Shown here: in pieces, positions 21,990 to 32,449 of the stretch
Numbering within the stretch: the stretch's first letter is position 1
Layout of the letters: each line of letters begins with the position of its first letter
Assembly: GCF_001194135.2 (NCBI RefSeq)
Contig: NC_068992.1
Span: 12,123,915 to 12,156,363, forward strand
Direction of reading: 5' to 3'
From: Octopus bimaculoides
Lineage: Eukaryota
DNA: 32,449 nucleotides
Notes under the pieces: generated by a model
The model's database searches: none
Seen by the model: only the letters and a program-made list of their open reading frames with translations
Told to the model about the DNA's origin: nothing
Made by a program: the position numbers and the translations under genes

Positions 21990-24700
21990 TTGAAAGCCTT
22001 GAAAACTTGCTCAGAAACTTCCAGCTGTCTGAGAGATACCGACTGGATTTCCTTGATGAGCCAATGTGGACATGGAGTAACCACAACGAGGTATCCAGAT
22101 CTTATCGGGATAGAGACTTTGTTAGGTAGGAGAATAGGAGTAGCGTAGGTTGTCCATAATTCAAATTGATCGGCTATACAGACCACAAATTTATAATCTG
22201 CACAGTCAATGTAGATAGGACTGGTAGACAGAGATCCGGTTACTGGAAGTTGTACACGTACTTACGTGTACGCAAACACTACTGGGACCAGATTAGCAAA
22301 GCAGATAAACCACAGTTGACATGGTCAATCGTCAACAACCAGTGATGATTGCTTTGAAGAGGGCGAATAAAGTAGAATCGATAGTGTTTAGCAAAGAAAT
22401 AGCTATAGAAAGAAATAGATTAGAGAGAGAACTAGTTGACAAACTAAGGCATCGCAACCGACGTGCTAGCCGCGAGAATGGCCCTTCACCATTTCTTTGA
22501 GGCAAACGCTGGGTTGTTAGAGCGAAGGCTCGTGCACCCAAATGCAAATGAACTGAAACCTTCCGATGGTCCCAAACTGTGAGGATGCGATGTGGCAACA
22601 AGACCACGATCAGAGCTTTGACGGATCAGTTACAAGTAGATATGTGCAACTTTCCCCGTAGCACTTCGCGCAGCTGTTTGAGGAAAACAAAGGGTCGACG
22701 GTAGCGAAATGTTGTTGTTACCTGGACGGCCTACCTCGGCTGTTGCCAGCGGATGCGAGGTGCTGCGCAAAACCAATAACGGCCTCTGAAATACGGGACG
22801 CGATGAGAGATTGCACAAATCGTAAATATCCCGGTTTGGATGGTGTGCCTTATGAATTCTCTGTGTTCGTGCCAGAGTTTTCACGACCTCTTGGCAGACG
22901 TCTACTGTAACTCGCAACGGAGCGCGAACATTCTTACTGCTATTAGCCGGTGTGTAGTATCAATACTGAGGAAGGACGCCAACAATAGGTACATTCCAGG
23001 ACATTTTCGGCCCATAAGTCTGCTAGATAGAGTGTAAGATTATGTTGACGGCGTTAGCGAAAAGGTTAGCGTTTGTAGTCGGTAGTCTGGGCAAAAAAGC
23101 GTAAACGTGCTCAATCACACATGTCCAATCACAACAACCTCCACTTTATGCGATATATCATAGTGAGGGCTGGGACTAAACCTGGCTTTGGTAGGGTGCT
23201 GATCAATTTGGATCGGTCGAAGCAATCGACAGGATCGACCATCGCTACTTGGAAGCCGTTCTGAAAGCGACCAGTTTTGGACCTGTTTTAGTGAGTGCAA
23301 TACACACCTATCAGGACCGTTTCGCATTTCACGCTCAGTCTATCAAAGCTGCCCGCTATCACCTCTTCTGCACATAGTGGCTGTCGAACCACTGCTGCGG
23401 AAGTTGAAACAGTTGAGGTGTTATTCCTTTCAAACAGGAACACGAGAGGGCAGTGTCGGAATACGCGGACGACGTCACTGTAATGGTGTCGGACGCCCCC
23501 GAAATGGAAACAGTCAGCTCCATTCTAAAGGAATATGAGTTGTTTGCAGGGGCCAAAATCAACGTAGACAAGTCGGTGAACTTGCGACTAGGAGAGACAG
23601 ATCGATGTTGTCGAACGACAGCGGCGGGCACTGGACTGACGGACCAATTAAACTGCTCGGGGTCTGGTTCGCTCCCGACTTCCAAGTAGATAAGAACTAG
23701 GACGAGGTGACGTGCAGGTTCAGCAGTCTTACCCAGAAATGGACAGAGAGGAAGCAGTTCCTGAAAGGTCGGGCAGAGGTGGCGAATGCTTACTTCCCCT
23801 CCGTCATCATTTATCGCCTGACCGTCATGTTGTGCTCCAGTTACTGCTTGATCAGGCTGGAGCGTATCTTATTTAATTTTTTTGTGGAGGGAAAGCGTTC
23901 CAATCGTCAGACGGTCAGTCTGCCACCAGCACCATCTACCTAGTAGCTTAGGTTTCTTATTCGCATACATGCACTAAGGTTGTGCCATCTGCAACGATTT
24001 TTGGACAGTGAACGCGCGTGGGTTCCGTTTGTGAGGCACGTCTTGGTGCAGTTGATCTCTTTGAAAGAGCTGCAGTCGTGGTGAAGAAAGACCGAGAGAC
24101 TGAGCGCTTAGTACCTCGAGTGTAGCTAGGCGCTCACAGTCGAGGAATGGGATCGGTGGATGTTCCACTGTAGCAAACTACATAGGAGTAGTGGTGGAGA
24201 AGTGCGATGACGTCCTCGTGGAGACACTGAGTGCCGACAAAAACGAACCGTTTGGTTGTTCTGGAAGACTTTCCAGTCGGGGAATACAATGCATAAATTT
24301 CAGATGTTCTTAGCCTGGCAGTGCTACCGACGGTCTATATCGGTTCGAGATAAACTCAACAGAATGGATATGCTGTCAAACCGGCCTGTCTCAAGTGCGT
24401 GCTGAACGGCGAAACCGTTTTGCACAGTTTCCTGGCATTGCTGTCTCTGGGCTTATGTGGGACAGCTGGTCTTGCGCATGGAATGGACCAGTCTATCGGC
24501 CGAGTCTATACTGATGTCTAGCTCGCCACGCTCCTTAAGTCGGGCAGGTAGGTAATGCACTTTTCCTTTGCCTGGTGGCTGTGGTGTAAAAGGTAGTCTG
24601 ATGTATGAGGCCTAGGCTGTGTTCCTCGTCCGTTGCTGTGGGTGGGCATGCCACCACAGCAACGGAGGGGAAAAAATTCTTCGTGAAATTTGGTGTGGCA
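21990..24700 (+). pseudogene. Decayed L1/Tx1-clade LINE ORF2 (partial APE endonuclease, reverse transcriptase, C-terminal CCHC)
   Basis: Motif remnants across shifting frames: WTWSN..SRSY.DR, DHKF, GYWKL, PGLDGVPYEF, FRPISLL, EYADDVTV (23462-23473 = YADD), GAKINVDKS, LKGRAEVAN, C..C...ETV.H. Many stops and frameshifts. Confidence 0.85.
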
Positions 24701-25126
24701 TTTTTGCCAATTTAATTCTACATGTGAATTTACTATTACGGAGAATGTGAACTTTTGAATTGTTTCAATTTTCGTGAAATTTGATGTGGCATTTTTTGCC
24801 AAATTTGAACATTCTCTGTGGATTTACCCTGCATTGCGGAGTGTGTCAAGAAGAGAACTCAGACAGCTGGAATACCGGTTGAAGTGAACTTTTTTGTTCA
24901 GAAAATAGGATTCCAGCCGGAACTTTTCTTTTTTCTCATTTTTTAAATTTCTTCTTCTTCCAATTTTGGTTTTCCTTTTGTTCTTTTTTCCTTTTCCTTT
25001 TCTCTTTTCTCATTTCTTCTTTCTTATTTTTTCTTTTATACGAACTGTGTTTATATTCCTTTGAACTTTTTGAACTTTTGAACTTTTTTAAATGCATGGC
25101 AAAGGAACGCTGCCCTGGAGTGAGAA

Positions 25127-25724
25127 TTGTGCCCACCCAAGCAGTGGTTGGATGAGATGGAGAAGAGGGCAGTGGTCATGCGGACCTATTGTAGGTCACG
25201 CAATACCATTGCCCTCTTCAACAAAGAGGTTGTTGAAAGAGAGCTGGCAATTTGTTTGCCAGCGAAGAAATTTTTTGTCTCGAGTGGGGGAGGAGTCAAG
25301 TTCGCAACGGTGTGGTTCCCCTGAGGAAGCTGCAAAAGCGGTCAGCCGGCCTCTGCAGGGGGAGGAAATTTTGTCCCTCCCCTCTTACTGCGGAAGGAGA
25401 ACAATTAGAGCCTGGGTTTATAGACTACCCCCATGGGCCAAGGCCGAGTGGATCACTGATACCATCCGGCAGGGCTTGGGGGACAGTGGACCCTGGCTCC
25501 TTAATGTTCACATGTCACCTGCGGTCTACTGGGAGGGCGCCAAGTCGACATTGACTTTGTGGACTCCAGTGGCCGTAGAGGACATGTGCTTCCCTGATTT
25601 CCTGAAGATGGCCGGGTCCAGCTACTCCATGATAATTGAGGGTCCCCCCCACCAATGTCATCTGTGCCTGGAACTTGGCTACATAAAAAAGAACTGCCCC
25701 GAGGGCCAAGGTAAGGCCCCGTAG
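25127..25724 (+). pseudogene. Frameshifted gag-like ORF1 of an L1/Tx1-type element
   Basis: ORF 25127 (...VKFATVWFP) joins the ORF 25092 frame (EEAAKAV...WVYRLPPWAKAEWI...CHLCLELGYIKKNCP). Ends in a CX2CX4(H>Y)X4C zinc-knuckle remnant. Confidence 0.65.
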
Positions 25725-26703
25725 CAAAAGAAAAAAGAAAAGGTGCCCTGGATCTATTTCAAAACGGGGGCACCAGTATTTTCTTAACGAAACACTAACG
25801 AAACACTTTGAAACTTGGGACACTGGTAGAATGTGTCATATAAAACATCTTTTACTCTTAGTCTTCTTAACAAAAAAGCGTACATCGCAAGTTATTCCAT
25901 GTTAAAGTTGTCGTATTTCTGTGATTTCAACCAATCACTGACGTCTATTCAGCTGAATAGTGTTACTGCTGGGTGGTCATAAAAAATGTTATTCCCTGTG
26001 ACATATTTCATCCGGTTTAATCGTAATTTATACGCATATATTGTTTATATAATAAATTATGCTGTGCGTATCTATGTGTGTAACAATTTTAGAGTTCGGA
26101 TTCTAGAGNNNNNNNNNNNNNNNNNNNNNNNNNNNNNNNNNNNNNNNNNNNNNNNNNNNNNNNNNNNNNNNNNNNNNNNNNNNNNNNNNNNNNNNNNNNN
26201 NNNNNNNNNNNNNNNNNNNNNNNNNNNNNNNNNNNNNNNNNNNNNNNNNNNNNNNNNNNNNNNNNNNNNNNNNNNNNNNNNNNNNNNNNNNNNNNNNNNN
26301 NNNNNNNNNNNNNNNNNNNNNNNNNNNNNNNNNNNNNNNNNNNNNNNNNNNNNNNNNNNNNNNNNNNNNNNNNNNNNNNNNNNNNNNNNNNNNNNNNNNN
26401 NNNNNNNNNNNNNNNNNNNNNNNNNNNNNNNNNNNNNNNNNNNNNNNNNNNNNNNNNNNNNNNNNNNNNNNNNNNNNNNNNNNNNNNNNNNNNNNNNNNN
26501 NNNNNNNNNNNNNNNNNNNNNNNNNNNNNNNNNNNNNNAGGCAGGTGCCTCCACAAAAAGAAAAGGAAAGGTGAGCAACGACAGTTGCACACCAGTAAAG
26601 ACTGCGGGAGAAGAGGAGGGCCCCTCAGGCGTGGTCATTTTCAAGTGTCAAAATGCTAGCTTCTCCATTCAGCACTGAGACAACATAAAGTAGTGTCGTA
26701 ATA

Positions 26704-27030: not shown

Positions 27031-28049
27031 TTCCCTATAATAATATTGTATATGACTGAGATGTTTGCCTCGCCTTAATGTTTGACGTCGTGTTAAACAA
27101 TTACATAAATGTGTGTGTGTGTGTATGTGTGTATGNNNNNNNNNNNNNNNNNNNNNNNNNNNNNNNNNNNNNNNNNNNNNNNNNNNNNNNNNNNNNNNNN
27201 NNNNNNNNNNNNNNNNNNNNNNNNNNNNNNNNNNNNNNNNNNNNNNNNNNNNNNNNNNNNNNNNNNNNNNNNNNNNNNNNNNNNNNNNNNNNNNNNNNNN
27301 NNNNNNNNNNNNNNNNNNNNNNNNNNNNNNNNNNNNNNNNNNNNNNNNNNNNNNNNNNNNNNNNNNNNNNNNNNNNNNNNNNNNNNNNNNNNNNNNNNNN
27401 NNNNNNNNNNNNNNNNNNNNNNNNNNNNNNNNNNNNNNNNNNNNNNNNNNNNNNNNNNNNNNNNNNNNNNNNNNNNNNNNNNNNNNNNNNNNNNNNNNNN
27501 NNNNNNNNNNNNNNNNNNNNNNNNNNNNNNNNNNNNNNNNNNNNNNNNNNNNNNNNNNNNNNNNNNNNNNNNNNNNNNNNNNNNNNNNNNNNNNNNNNNN
27601 NNNNNNNNNNNNNNNNNNNNNNNNNNNNNNNNNNNNNNNNNNNNNNNNNNNNNNNNNNNNNNNNNNNNNNNNNNNNNNNNNNNNNNNNNNNNNNNNNNNN
27701 NNNNNNNNNNNNNNNNNNNNNNNNNNNNNNNNNNNNNNNNNNNNNNNNNNNNNNNNNNNNNNNNNNNNNNNNNNNNNNNNNNNNNNNNNNNNNNNNNNNN
27801 NNNNNNNNNNNNNNNNNNNNNNNNNNNNNNNNNNNNNNNNNNNNNNNNNNNNNNNNNNNNNNNNNNNNNNNNNNNNNNNNNNNNNNNNNNNNNNNNNNNN
27901 NNNNNNNNNNNNNNNNNNNNNNNNNNNNNNNNNNNNNNNNNNNNNNNNNNNNNNNNNNNNNNNNNNNNNNNNNNNNNNNNNNNNNGAGAGAGAGAGAGAG
28001 AGAAAGAGTGAAGATGGAGAGTGTACATATACAGGAACACACACATATA

Positions 28050-29559: not shown

Positions 29560-29690
29560 GAAAAGACGCTGTTGTTGCTATTTACCATAGAAGCGGCATT
29601 CTTTAAACGCTAACGAAAGAAATGTTCCTGCTATAAACGGAAATTGCAAAATAACACAAGTGAAAGCTTCGAAAATATTCGAGAAGAAAT
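29560..29690 (+). promoter_or_regulatory. Conserved upstream / 5'UTR block of paralog C
   Basis: Homologous to 8532-8652; homology stops abruptly 5' of GAAAAGACG. Confidence 0.4.
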
Positions 29691-32449
29691 ATGAAACATT
29701 TACGTTTACTTTTTATACTATTCAATTTTTTGCCTTCAAATAATGGGAAATATTTTATTAGGTTTAAAGGAGAGCATTTCCCCCCACGTAGCATTCCTTC
29801 TAATCCACTAGATCTCTACTATTCTGTCCCATTAAATCAAACGATTAGCAAACCAATAATTGCCGTGATACATTATGAGAACGGGAATCTGTTACCACCA
29901 AAACCACCATCAAACCTAACAGCAAAGGTGACATCATTGGATGTTAAAACAGCTGAAAACAGTTCTCATTCAGACACTTGGGCTGAGAGTGGAGGTAGAT
30001 TGTGTCAGAAAACAGCATGGTGGCTGGGTTATCCGGAGAGATTAAATAGAGAGTATGCGAAAACCCGATGTGGATCACCGAATTCTAAAGTTGAATTGAA
30101 CATTGAAATATTCAAAGGAGAAATAATAATTGACTGGATCTACCATGAACATACAATATTACCGCCTGGCCCACGTTTGCTGAGAATTGAGGTCCCCAAA
30201 TATCATGCAAAAACTGACACTAATCCAATACGTATTACAGTTCCTGCACATCATTTGCGAGTTACCAAGCAACCGCCTGCATCAGTAAAGGCGAACCATA
30301 ATTTCGATGTTGAGGTCGAAATTCGCGATAGCAGCGATGAACGAGTAGAAGACGGTCTTGATTCGGTGGCTTTTGTTATATTAACAGTTCCGTATGACTA
30401 TAAGAAATTCTATGCCGACAAAAAGAAAGAAATGATTTTAGCTGTGACAGAAATTACGCTGGACGCTGATGAATTTTTGTTACATCTCAACACACGAGAT
30501 TTGTCAATTCGTAAACAAGCGGAGAAGGGTAAAGTTGCTTTCCGAACTGTTCGAATTTTAGAAGCAGTCTATCATTTTCAGTTAAACATAACGATGACAA
30601 TGGCACGTGATCCTTTTACTAGAATTCCATCTTGTCCGTCTTGCTATATCGATTTTGATCACTATAAAATTTCAGATGATCGCAAATATTATCTGTTCAC
30701 TCGCGTGACAGGTGCGAAACAGGTGCATATATTACCTATGGTTTTCACGTCTCTAATGAGAATCGAGGTTCAGCGTATAAAGAAATTAGTTCTCGATGAA
30801 AACGTGATGGAAAGATGGGATAAAATTCGAGATCACGCAACGAATAGAATCCCTATATTACTAAGTACCTTCATCCCTGGTAGATTTTCTCTTATTGCGT
30901 TGGATAGCGATGGGCGTCGAGTATATTCTGAGCCAGATTCAAATCAACATTTAGTGCTTGATAGTATCCCAACTGGAGTTTGTATATCTCCTGACAGTGT
31001 TACTGAATTAAAAAGGGGAAGGTCGCTAATATACATATCAATATGCCACATAATTGACAAGGTGCAATTAAAATTTTCACTTGAAAACAATTTCCAAATT
31101 TCATATACAACACCAGAGTTTACCGTCCTAGGTAATATTTCAATTGTCCACCTTGGAGATCTTCACTACAGTGGGTCTGGAGAAAACGTTGATTCTCACG
31201 TAAATACTTTCATTCGACTTGCTGTAAATGACATCAACAATGGAATAATAGCTCCGTATTTGAAAAACAAGGGCATATGGTTCAGTGTAAAAAGCGTTGA
31301 TACCAAGAACGATATATCGACTGCTTACAAAAAATTAATGGATTTGACTTCAGAAACTAATTTACTTCGTTATGATAGTATACGCTTAGTGATAAGTAGT
31401 GTGTCAACAGATATCTCTGAAGCAGTGTACCCATTACTTCTGAAAGGGCGTATACCATTTATTTCAACAGCTAACATTGGACTTGATAACACCTTTCACA
31501 AAAAGTACAGATATCTCAACAGAGTTTGCTGGACAGAAGATGCACTAATTAACTCAGTACTTCTGGCCTCGAAAGAACGCAGATGGTTTAAGATAATAAT
31601 GATCCGTTATGAAGAAACTCGTGTGAGCCCTCGGTTTTACGTCTACATGAAAAGATATGGAATTAAACGTGTCGGACTTATTGTCCTACCGATTGTTAAA
31701 CCTAATCAAAATATTAGAGCGGCTGACAGATATTACTCATCACAAATGGTACGCGTTTCAACTATGGGTGGTAAAATAATATTTTTTTTTGCCCCAAGGT
31801 CTATTCAACCCATTGTTTTACACGGAGCATTTTTGAGTGGCATCTCTTCGATGCATGGTTTTCAATGGGTGTTATTTGGTGAACATGTCTGGCATTTCCC
31901 TTTTGATAATGAAGGTATATGCAGCAAGACAAAAAAATGTACTGAAGCATTTGCAGGCACGTATTTATTTAGTGAACAATATAATATAAGCGGCTATAGT
32001 TCATCGGACTGGTTTCGAGTATTCGGTAATTGGTTTGCAGCCGACAAAACTATGTACAAAGGCGGAAGTGTAAGCTACAGACCCAACTATATTGGTGCAA
32101 GAATGGGGCTTGGATACGATGCTGTGCATCTTTATGCAGACATGCTGGCAAAAATCCTTCGTCAACATCTGACAGCAACCGGTAGACTACAAGCAGATCA
32201 ATTACGAAATCTAAAGATCCATGGTTTGACTTCTGACCTTGAACTTGATAAGAATGGAAACCGCATTGGTTACTTTGGATTTTTAGCGCAAATTAATCCC
32301 AAAACTAATCGAACAAGTTCAGGTGAAGAAAGAGTCCTAGAATTTATAAGGTTCTTCCGGCGACTCAACCATTCTGCTCAGCTAGAAATACCATATTTTG
32401 CAAAAGGAGATTACGAAAGCTTTGACACTGAGGCTCTGTCTGCACTACC
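29691..32449 (+). CDS. Receptor guanylyl cyclase paralog C, intronless, truncated by the window edge after 919 codons (extracellular region only visible)
   Basis: Uninterrupted frame from ATG 29691 (MKHLRLLFILFNFLPSNNGKYF...) to the window end. Collinear with paralog B with no indels seen outside B's gap. Contains DSHVNTFIRLAVNDINNG and MGLGYDAVHLYA (ANF-receptor-like hallmarks). TM and cyclase lie outside the window, so identity rests on paralogy. Confidence 0.9.
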   Translation, partial: MKHLRLLFILFNFLPSNNGKYFIRFKGEHFPPRSIPSNPLDLYYSVPLNQTISKPIIAVIHYENGNLLPPKPPSNLTAKVTSLDVKTAENSSHSDTWAESGGRLCQKTAWWLGYPERLNREYAKTRCGSPNSKVELNIEIFKGEIIIDWIYHEHTILPPGPRLLRIEVPKYHAKTDTNPIRITVPAHHLRVTKQPPASVKANHNFDVEVEIRDSSDERVEDGLDSVAFVILTVPYDYKKFYADKKKEMILAVTEITLDADEFLLHLNTRDLSIRKQAEKGKVAFRTVRILEAVYHFQLNITMTMARDPFTRIPSCPSCYIDFDHYKISDDRKYYLFTRVTGAKQVHILPMVFTSLMRIEVQRIKKLVLDENVMERWDKIRDHATNRIPILLSTFIPGRFSLIALDSDGRRVYSEPDSNQHLVLDSIPTGVCISPDSVTELKRGRSLIYISICHIIDKVQLKFSLENNFQISYTTPEFTVLGNISIVHLGDLHYSGSGENVDSHVNTFIRLAVNDINNGIIAPYLKNKGIWFSVKSVDTKNDISTAYKKLMDLTSETNLLRYDSIRLVISSVSTDISEAVYPLLLKGRIPFISTANIGLDNTFHKKYRYLNRVCWTEDALINSVLLASKERRWFKIIMIRYEETRVSPRFYVYMKRYGIKRVGLIVLPIVKPNQNIRAADRYYSSQMVRVSTMGGKIIFFFAPRSIQPIVLHGAFLSGISSMHGFQWVLFGEHVWHFPFDNEGICSKTKKCTEAFAGTYLFSEQYNISGYSSSDWFRVFGNWFAADKTMYKGGSVSYRPNYIGARMGLGYDAVHLYADMLAKILRQHLTATGRLQADQLRNLKIHGLTSDLELDKNGNRIGYFGFLAQINPKTNRTSSGEERVLEFIRFFRRLNHSAQLEIPYFAKGDYESFDTEALSAL

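Follow-up and report, generated by a model that had tools for sequence, protein, structure and literature searches.

During our examination of a 32.4-kb stretch of the Octopus bimaculoides genome (32,449 nucleotides of contig NC_068992.1; hereafter the window, meaning the whole stretch that was analyzed) we found three long intronless reading frames, paralogous to each other and designated A, B, and C, that appear to encode receptor guanylyl cyclases (rGCs) with a long N-terminal extension ahead of the ANF domain. Paralog C, on the plus strand, occupies 29691 to the window end (32449), where its frame, open over 29664-32447 (928 uninterrupted codons), leaves the window. An in-frame stop lies just upstream of 29664, and the ATG at 29691 begins a predicted signal peptide, MKHLRLLFILFNFLPSNNG (residues 1-19, 29691..29747, plus strand); this N-terminus aligns with those of B and of the homologues described below, and was modeled by AlphaFold2 (AF2) as a helix with a low predicted local distance difference test score (pLDDT). 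An ANF_receptor domain, of the type I periplasmic-binding-protein (PBP) fold, follows at 31170..32267 on the plus strand (PF01094, E 1.4e-9, residues 508-859), with a weaker match to Peripla_BP_6 (PF13458) from residue 494. Paralog A lies on the minus strand at 3..3749 and runs off the window start after a 1250-codon open frame, in which a signal peptide and the extension (3749 down to ~2313, with an N gap at 2853-3091 inside it) are followed by an ANF domain (ANF_receptor, E 8.5e-12), EGF-like modules (EGF_TEN; residues ~973-1056 of the minus-strand open reading frame, ORF), a hydrophobic transmembrane segment (IIFPILFGAFLLIGILYFMGGI), and the start of a kinase-homology domain (PK_Tyr_Ser-Thr, E 3.9e-14).

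Paralog B, on the plus strand, is the only copy whose 3' end lies in the window. Its extension (411 residues, 8653..9885) is ended by an N gap at 9886-10378, and the remainder of the gene (10379..13670, 1053 uninterrupted codons in addition to the first 411) resumes in another frame and closes with a stop codon at 13668-13670. Starting after the gap at 10379 there is a partial, gap-truncated ANF domain (E 2.5e-4), then three EGF-like modules (~11556-11807; Pfam EGF_TEN, JAG1-like_EGF2, and EGF_2), a transmembrane helix (11811-11879, segment VGYIVLITVAVILISSFFMYLIV), a kinase-homology domain (~12018-12845; PK_Tyr_Ser-Thr, E 4.1e-32), and a class III cyclase domain (~13041-13592; PF00211 Guanylate_cyc, 212.9 bits, E 3.7e-63); A and C leave the window before the cyclase domain, and C before the transmembrane segment also. 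Since the reading frame of B shifts across its gap, the length of that gap is arbitrary. It is one of seven N gaps in the window (2853-3091, 5977-6051, 9886-10378, 15844-15853, 16271-17040, 26109-26538, and 27136-27985), two of which fall inside the extensions of A and B.

By these domain matches we assign the paralogs to the rGC family, all of whose defining domains are present, the cyclase being seen in B only. Canonical rGCs (GC-A/NPR1 and invertebrate rGCs) have an ANF ectodomain, one transmembrane helix, a kinase-homology domain, and a class III cyclase, in the same order as found here, and their ectodomain is essentially the ANF domain alone. Unlike canonical NPR-type rGCs, the receptors described here have ~465 immunoglobulin-like (Ig-like) residues before the ANF domain and three EGF-like modules after it, so that the full architecture reads signal peptide, three Ig-like domains, ANF/PBP-type domain, three EGF-like modules, transmembrane helix, kinase-homology domain, and cyclase. 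As judged from their domain content, the EGF-like modules are a second non-canonical trait of this rGC subfamily, and one that is common to its homologues in Argonauta, Sinanodonta, and Strigamia. With an ectodomain that exceeds the ANF domain by this predicted margin, the paralogs are not canonical natriuretic peptide receptors. The Argonauta homologues are named "atrial natriuretic peptide receptor 1-like" by NCBI; the database entries of this subfamily bear automatic names only, and "ANP receptor" is one of these.

An earlier note on this DNA, made by reading the sequence alone, had placed a beta-rich extension at 29760-31130, which corresponds to residues 24-480 of paralog C, and had described it as lying before an ANF-like domain in all three paralogs. 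The reading frames and the Pfam matches bear this out, with the extensions of A and B interrupted by gaps. In C the extension comes to ~465 mature residues between the signal peptide and the ANF domain, because the ANF match starts at residues 494-508 and Pfam is blank over residues 1-490 (no match at E≤1); NCBIfam likewise gave no match in the extension. All of the strings quoted in the note are present in the window, e.g., HLRVTKQPPASVKANHNFDVEVEIRDSSDERV in B and C, HRLVISQQPPLKVVANSDFDVEVEIRDEDGKIL in A, SVPLNQTISKPII, GEIIIDWIY, LLRIEV, and TNPIRIT in B and C, and LIALDSDGRRV, GRSLIYISI, VQLKF, and YTTPEFTV in C; two of them, GKVVFRTIRIL and LELNITM, follow the spelling of B, for C has GKVAFRTVRIL and FQLNITM. 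The cysteine-bounded insert it had pointed to, LCQKTAWWLGYPERLNREYAKTRC, occurs in B and C, and A has a version of it (LCQKSAWW...KTRC). The extension has five N-X-S/T sequons and six cysteines in three conserved pairs, and together with the signal peptide these features indicate an extracellular location.

The note had further proposed that the extension is built from tandem Ig-like beta-sandwich modules, and had made the proposal depend on the predicted structure being one of beta-sandwich repeats. We built an AF2 model of the paralog C extension (486 residues) on an 18-homologue alignment, a model from the window's three paralogs only having been discarded with a pLDDT of 29.3. The model was confident (pLDDT 89.1, predicted TM-score (pTM) 0.82, 324 residues at ≥90) and consisted of beta-sandwich repeats, nearly all strands, which fall into three groups, residues 20-185, 186-305, and 366-482, the last two being separated by a 60-residue connector that has one helix and four short strands of its own. 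In the PDB, Foldseek found 193 matches at E≤1e-3, the top ones being NUP210 (7r5k_10, E 4e-8), invasin (1cwv, 8e-8), and 4e9l (1e-6), with a probability of 1.00; other leading matches were to the S-layer proteins SbsC and EA1, Ig-like domains of PrgB, FdeC, A2M-family macroglobulin (MG) domains, DIP/Dpr Ig domains, and phage Hoc. The best matches are thus strings of Ig-like domains, as the note had expected, and the model supports an extension folded as three elaborated Ig-like beta-sandwich domains. PDB sequence-profile searches gave no meaningful match with the extension, nor with a protein carrying the bacterial repeat introduced below. No I-set, V-set, or C2 match was found in the extension by Pfam, and its cysteine pairs (C105/C127, C315/C318, and C431/C452, spaced by 22, 3, and 21 residues) are too close for the canonical B-F disulfide (~55-70 residues), placing it outside the classical immunoglobulin superfamily.

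Module 1 (residues 20-185; 29748..30245, plus strand) is a large beta-sandwich into which a Cys-bounded loop is inserted. Its strands were predicted at residues 21-25, 56-62, 77-84, 103-108, 124-127, 135-139, 144-147, 150-153, 162-168, and 173-176, with pLDDT ~90. The loop, running from Cys105 to Cys127 (30003..30071, plus strand), is a candidate disulfide-closed insert: C105 is kept in all 14 of the homologues that cover it and C127 in 11 of the 14, with two of the exceptions having a Cys one column off, which makes a disulfide-closed loop plausible as far as conservation can tell. Module 2 (residues 186-305; 30246..30605, plus strand) is Ig-like, with strands within 188-303 at pLDDT 90-97 and an internal insert of ~35 residues, and is the best conserved of the three. 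The connector (residues 306-365; 30606..30785, plus strand) holds a CPSC motif (C315, C318) and was modeled with a helix at 316-323 and short strands at 325-327, 333-336, 350-352, and 356-359; its CxxC is confined to cephalopods (9/15). Module 3 (residues 366-485; 30786..31145, plus strand), also Ig-like, has strands within 386-480 and a cysteine pair, C431/C452, that is kept in 9/10 homologues, and it abuts the ANF domain. Motifs that are strongly conserved between cephalopods and bivalves include YSVPLNQxISxPII, the LCQ...C pair, and RILD..LNxTM.

The self-similar pattern that the note had seen among the modules stood at the level of profiles and not at that of raw sequence. Local alignment of module against module gave z values of -0.4 to 1.0 against 300 shuffles, which is chance, and self-BLASTP found none. 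When we cut module profiles from the 18-sequence alignment and compared them by hhalign, module 2 matched module 3 (80.8%, P 1.3e-5), module 1 matched module 3 (60%, P 8.5e-5), and module 1 matched module 2 more faintly (7.4%, P 4.7e-3), relative to 16 controls run with blocks from the ANF region of these proteins (≤1.7%, P 0.029-0.88). The connector had no significant hhalign match to the other modules.

The strongest profile match of all was to a bacterial repeat. With a profile of the window's own copies we searched 1.84 billion cluster representatives exhaustively by HMMER, and 107 proteins matched (numbered here P0001 onward). About 85 of the 107 were long proteins matched over 2-21 stretches, each falling at profile positions ~173-235, i.e., at the start of module 2, with E-values down to 2.7e-32. 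About ten of these repeat proteins were inspected; they come from metagenomes and metagenome-assembled genomes (MAGs), e.g., MCB0421093.1 from a Bdellovibrionales MAG, and are composed of head-to-tail units of ~100 residues with the pattern ATQLVVTTQPPxxVxAGxxFxLxVxxEDxxGN ... GVAxFxGLxLxxAGxGYTL ... SxAFxVT. The motif that the note had likened to Ig-like repeats of bacterial and protist surface proteins (L..QP....A..F.V.V..D..G with G..F..L) is the signature of this tandem repeat, and module 2 matches it significantly: by hhalign the two agree over both domain halves (96.4%, P 1e-9), and a hidden Markov model (HMM) built from bacterial repeats only matched C residues 185-225 at 25.7 bits. Shared between module 2 and the repeat (MCB0421093.1, P0007, P0009, P0023) is LvvtxQPPxxVxAGxxFxlxVxxeDxxGN ... 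GvAxFxgLxl...GYxL. Module 3 also matched the repeat by hhalign (35%, P 4e-4), and the bacterial-repeat HMM, which on the cephalopod proteins matched module 2, matched both modules 2 and 3 on the less diverged bivalve proteins, with i-E values for module 3 of 5.8e-5 (P0018) and 1.1e-3 (P0014); module 1 had no significant match to it (P 0.07). From these profile comparisons we conclude that module 2, module 3, and the bacterial repeat are homologues. The two contexts differ considerably. In the bacterial proteins 5-21 nearly identical copies, rich in Ala, Gly, Thr, and Ser, follow one another head to tail, whereas the animal modules occur once each, have diverged far from one another, bear inserts and cysteine pairs, and are set on a signaling receptor. 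The repeat itself gave nothing above threshold in Pfam or NCBIfam, with weak matches to Big_3_3, Big_13, Invasin_D3, Ig_CFAP74, and DUF7348; it is widespread (e.g., P0007, P0008, P0009, P0011, P0012, P0023, and P0029) and is a candidate new domain family in its own right.

Outside the repeat proteins, the HMMER matches fell in a few protostome proteins. Six of them (P0001-P0006) matched the whole extension with E-values of 1e-92 to 1e-140; P0001-P0004 are full-length at 1619-1694 residues, P0005 (677) and P0006 (436) are shorter models, and two of the six, P0001 included, are Argonauta hians proteins, the rest coming from ENA contigs. Weaker single-stretch matches were found in the gastropod Gigantopelta aegis, the bivalves Sinanodonta woodiana and Tegillarca granosa, and the centipede Strigamia maritima, those of the gastropod and the second bivalve being to short models. 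In four of the homologues, P0001, P0002, P0018 (Sinanodonta), and P0019 (Strigamia), the extension is found together with ANF, EGF, and kinase domains; P0001, P0002, and P0019 have the cyclase domain as well, and the P0018 model, which is partial, is without it. P0002 is encoded by a single gap-free ORF of 1694 codons on an independent 144-kb ENA contig (L001, 10001-15085). In addition, a 23%-identical eukaryotic relative (L002/L003, 10001-18900) has EGF and protein-kinase ORF fragments downstream, which suggests, on the pattern of its fragments, an intron-split gene of the same design.

The taxonomic check called for in the note therefore gave two sets of relatives, those with the extension being mollusc and centipede rGCs and those with the repeat coming, among the proteins inspected, from metagenomes and MAGs. 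No vertebrate, insect, or nematode rGC was matched by the extension in the 1.84 billion representatives, and no Pfam family covers it, in agreement with the note's statement that canonical rGCs are without it. The extension is not octopus-specific and not an assembly artefact; because the rGCs of Argonauta, a bivalve, and a centipede carry it, we regard it as a conserved protostome feature, which marks an old rGC subfamily present in cephalopods, bivalves, a centipede, and probably gastropods. The domain shuffling that the note had considered, if there was any, is ancient and not specific to octopus. A word-indexed protein search behaved differently: with the C extension it gave no match, although homologues at E 1e-140 sit in the same collection, and with the 18-sequence alignment it returned P0045 only, again missing known homologues in that collection. 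Having missed such close relatives, its negatives on eukaryotic queries do not indicate absence. Our literature search found no description of an rGC whose ectodomain has Ig-like or EGF modules, nor of this cephalopod family, a weak negative given that most subscription journals lay outside the search.

The three paralogs are unevenly diverged. Over the extension B is 86% identical to C in amino acids and A 32-51%. At the DNA level B and C are 92.3% identical between window positions 8532-9885 and 29560-30923 (1364 nt, including ~130 nt 5' of the ATG), with a synonymous divergence (dS) of 0.06; in the ANF region (10379-11343 vs 31472-32436) they are 77% identical, with dS 0.65 and a ratio of nonsynonymous to synonymous divergence (dN/dS) of 0.32. 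Such a mosaic points to gene conversion, or else to a duplication that took in only the 5' part. In the young tract dN/dS was ~1.15, not different from neutrality (P 0.36), and residues 306-411, an interval picked post hoc that adjoins the assembly gap, had 33 non-synonymous and 2 synonymous changes (P 0.009). Between A and C, dN/dS was 0.29 over residues 1-219, indicating that the extension has been constrained over the long term. Paralog A is 54% identical to Argonauta hians P0001 and C is 40% identical to it; since A is closer to the Argonauta protein than C is, the A lineage probably separated from that of B and C earlier than the octopod genera did from one another. The octopod genes are clustered single uninterrupted ORFs of ~1650-1700 codons, and a retroposed origin of the cluster is suggested because each is one ORF and the distant relative on L002/L003 is split into many ORF fragments.

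Elsewhere in the window, long (CA)n, (TACA)n-like, and (ATT)n-like microsatellites generate many spurious ORFs. Between B and C there is a degenerate reverse-transcriptase fragment at 23417-23686 on the plus strand (RVT_1, E 0.0026, below threshold); the ORFs around it (22335-25835) had no Pfam match, and one stretch (25092-25721) contains a CCHC-like zinc-knuckle string. This region is probably a decayed retroelement.

The explanation that we favor, and consider fairly probable, is that the extension consists of three Ig-like domains set on the ectodomain of a protostome rGC subfamily, with modules 2 and 3 kin to the bacterial repeat, and has an accessory role in recognition or positioning. 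The ANF domain of an rGC normally dimerises and passes a ligand-induced rotation to the cyclase. In the paralogs the three Ig-like domains would sit at the membrane-distal end of the receptor, on the ANF domain, where they might engage a partner (a protein, a glycan, or matrix) or hold out a ligand to the ANF dimer; binding of such a partner could alter the geometry of the ANF-domain dimer and hence cGMP synthesis. The conserved core motifs would keep the fold, the variable surfaces would differ between paralogues, and the rapid amino-acid divergence of B and C might tune paralog-specific recognition. There are parallels to this arrangement. The Big domains of invasin, intimin, and FdeC, and the Ig-like domains of NUP210, which gave the best structural matches to the extension, form rod-like beta-sandwich arrays presenting a distal binding surface; invasin ends in a C-type-lectin-like integrin-binding domain, whereas the array described here ends on the ANF domain, and the invasin-type and NUP210 domains have no sequence-level match to the extension and a TM-score of ~0.2. 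In single-pass receptor kinases, distal Ig-like arrays on dimeric receptors couple outside binding to intracellular catalysis. The analogy is functional only, as the paralogs have another Ig-like subtype and a cyclase output, and keep the ANF domain as a probable second binding site.

Several observations weigh against this explanation. The Foldseek TM-scores were low (0.13-0.25, query-normalised, in a whole-model comparison), which is due to only parts of the multi-domain chains superposing, as their inter-domain angles differ, and the AF2 alignment held 18 sequences only. No curated Ig-like Pfam model (Big, Invasin, I-set) reaches threshold on any module, and by profile comparison the kinship of module 1 with modules 2 and 3 appears marginal. 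The place of the connector in the fold is ambiguous: it may be inserted ahead of the final strand of module 2, or it may form a small subdomain. When we asked whether it supplies that final strand, the local hhalign alignment was collinear but not significant (P 0.6), and the global alignment put the bacterial last strand on RDPFTRIP instead. The dN/dS near 1 between B and C could just as well reflect relaxed constraint on a redundant copy. The analysis demonstrates the unbroken reading frame, the order of the domains, the predicted fold, the profile-level kinship with the bacterial repeat, and conservation across phyla; the accessory role, which we think most likely, is the most economical inference.

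The main rival is that the extension is a passive rigid spacer which sets the height or orientation of the ANF domain over the membrane and glycocalyx and has no binding specificity of its own. For a multi-domain model of 486 residues, a pTM of 0.82 suggests that the domains are fixed relative to one another, many of the Foldseek matches (NUP210, S-layer SbsC, filamin) are to structural domain strings, and the B/C dN/dS fits weak constraint on surface residues. However, the extension would not separate the ANF domain from the membrane but would lie beyond it, on the distal side, a position from which a spacer role is not obvious; the EGF modules already supply a stalk; and the strong conservation of motifs from cephalopods to bivalves would be unexpected of mere filler. 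We find a spacer less attractive than an accessory module, and on balance unlikely.

The kinship with the bacterial repeat raises the possibility that a bacterial adhesin-type Ig-like repeat arrived by horizontal transfer and was then shuffled onto an rGC, bringing with it an adhesin-like binding of microbial or matrix surfaces, which we consider distinctly unlikely. It would explain why, outside the rGC subfamily, nearly all matches are multi-repeat proteins, those that were looked up being from metagenomes or MAGs and apparently bacterial, why the 107 hits include no further metazoan protein family that we could recognise, and why the hhalign match (P 1e-9) extends over the whole domain. Yet Ig-like folds are universal, and an identity of 15-20% establishes neither a transfer nor its direction; of the repeat proteins about ten were inspected, and some could be eukaryotic. 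Molluscs and a centipede share the extension, so any transfer must be very old: a recent bacterial origin is excluded by the taxonomic spread, and an ancient one is possible. A more elaborate version, to which we would give little credence, has such a repeat captured early in protostomes, so that a peptide-type rGC became a receptor for contact with ligands that are surface-bound, microbial, or part of the matrix; in octopods this receptor type would have been retroposed, tandem-amplified, and diversified by gene conversion and by positive selection in the membrane-distal modules, giving a hitherto unrecognised cGMP-coupled family for chemotactile or immune recognition.

It seems very improbable that the extension is beta-rich but not strictly Ig-like, e.g., made of MG, Calx-beta, cadherin-like, or carbohydrate-binding domains, or that the number or boundaries of the modules are other than the three given here. 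MG domains of A2M, C3, and CD109 and the Calx-beta domain of NCX1 were among the Foldseek matches, modules 1 and 2 each have at least 10 predicted strands compared with 7-9 in plain Ig-like domains, and there was no Ig-family Pfam match. But MG and Calx-beta domains count as Ig-like sandwiches too, Ig-like strings (invasin, FdeC, PrgB, NUP210) made up the majority of the best-scoring matches, alongside the SbsC and EA1 S-layer proteins and a mastigoneme flagellar hair, and the weak sub-threshold matches of the bacterial repeat were to Invasin_D3, Big_3_3, Big_13, and Ig_CFAP74. We rejected as extremely improbable the idea that an upstream ORF was joined to an rGC by misassembly or that the copies are decaying pseudogenes, for which a draft assembly with gaps in the A and B extensions and a frame shift in B gave some grounds, as C is continuous and without a gap over the junction of extension and ANF domain, the same fusion is present in the Argonauta proteins and in the intact P0002 frame on contig L001, the frames run for 900-1250 codons with no stop codons, and the A/C dN/dS is below 1.

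We therefore return to an accessory module on an rGC ectodomain, and to what it would mean for this family of receptors. The rGCs are usually described with one ectodomain design, the ANF/PBP-type dimer, and expansions of the family are known in invertebrates, e.g., the GCYs of C. elegans, which are sensory receptors. The domain matches make a solid case for an architectural novelty within this well-known receptor family, likely a lineage-specific accessory ectodomain without dramatic consequence. Two sequence families that are absent from the curated libraries searched, the rGC N-terminal extension and the bacterial ~100-residue repeat, are defined by the analysis. Three Ig-like domains together with an EGF stalk imply another mode of ligand engagement, which may involve a protein, matrix, or surface-bound ligand, or a co-receptor, and the tandem intronless cephalopod copies would provide a tractable candidate sensory or recognition family.

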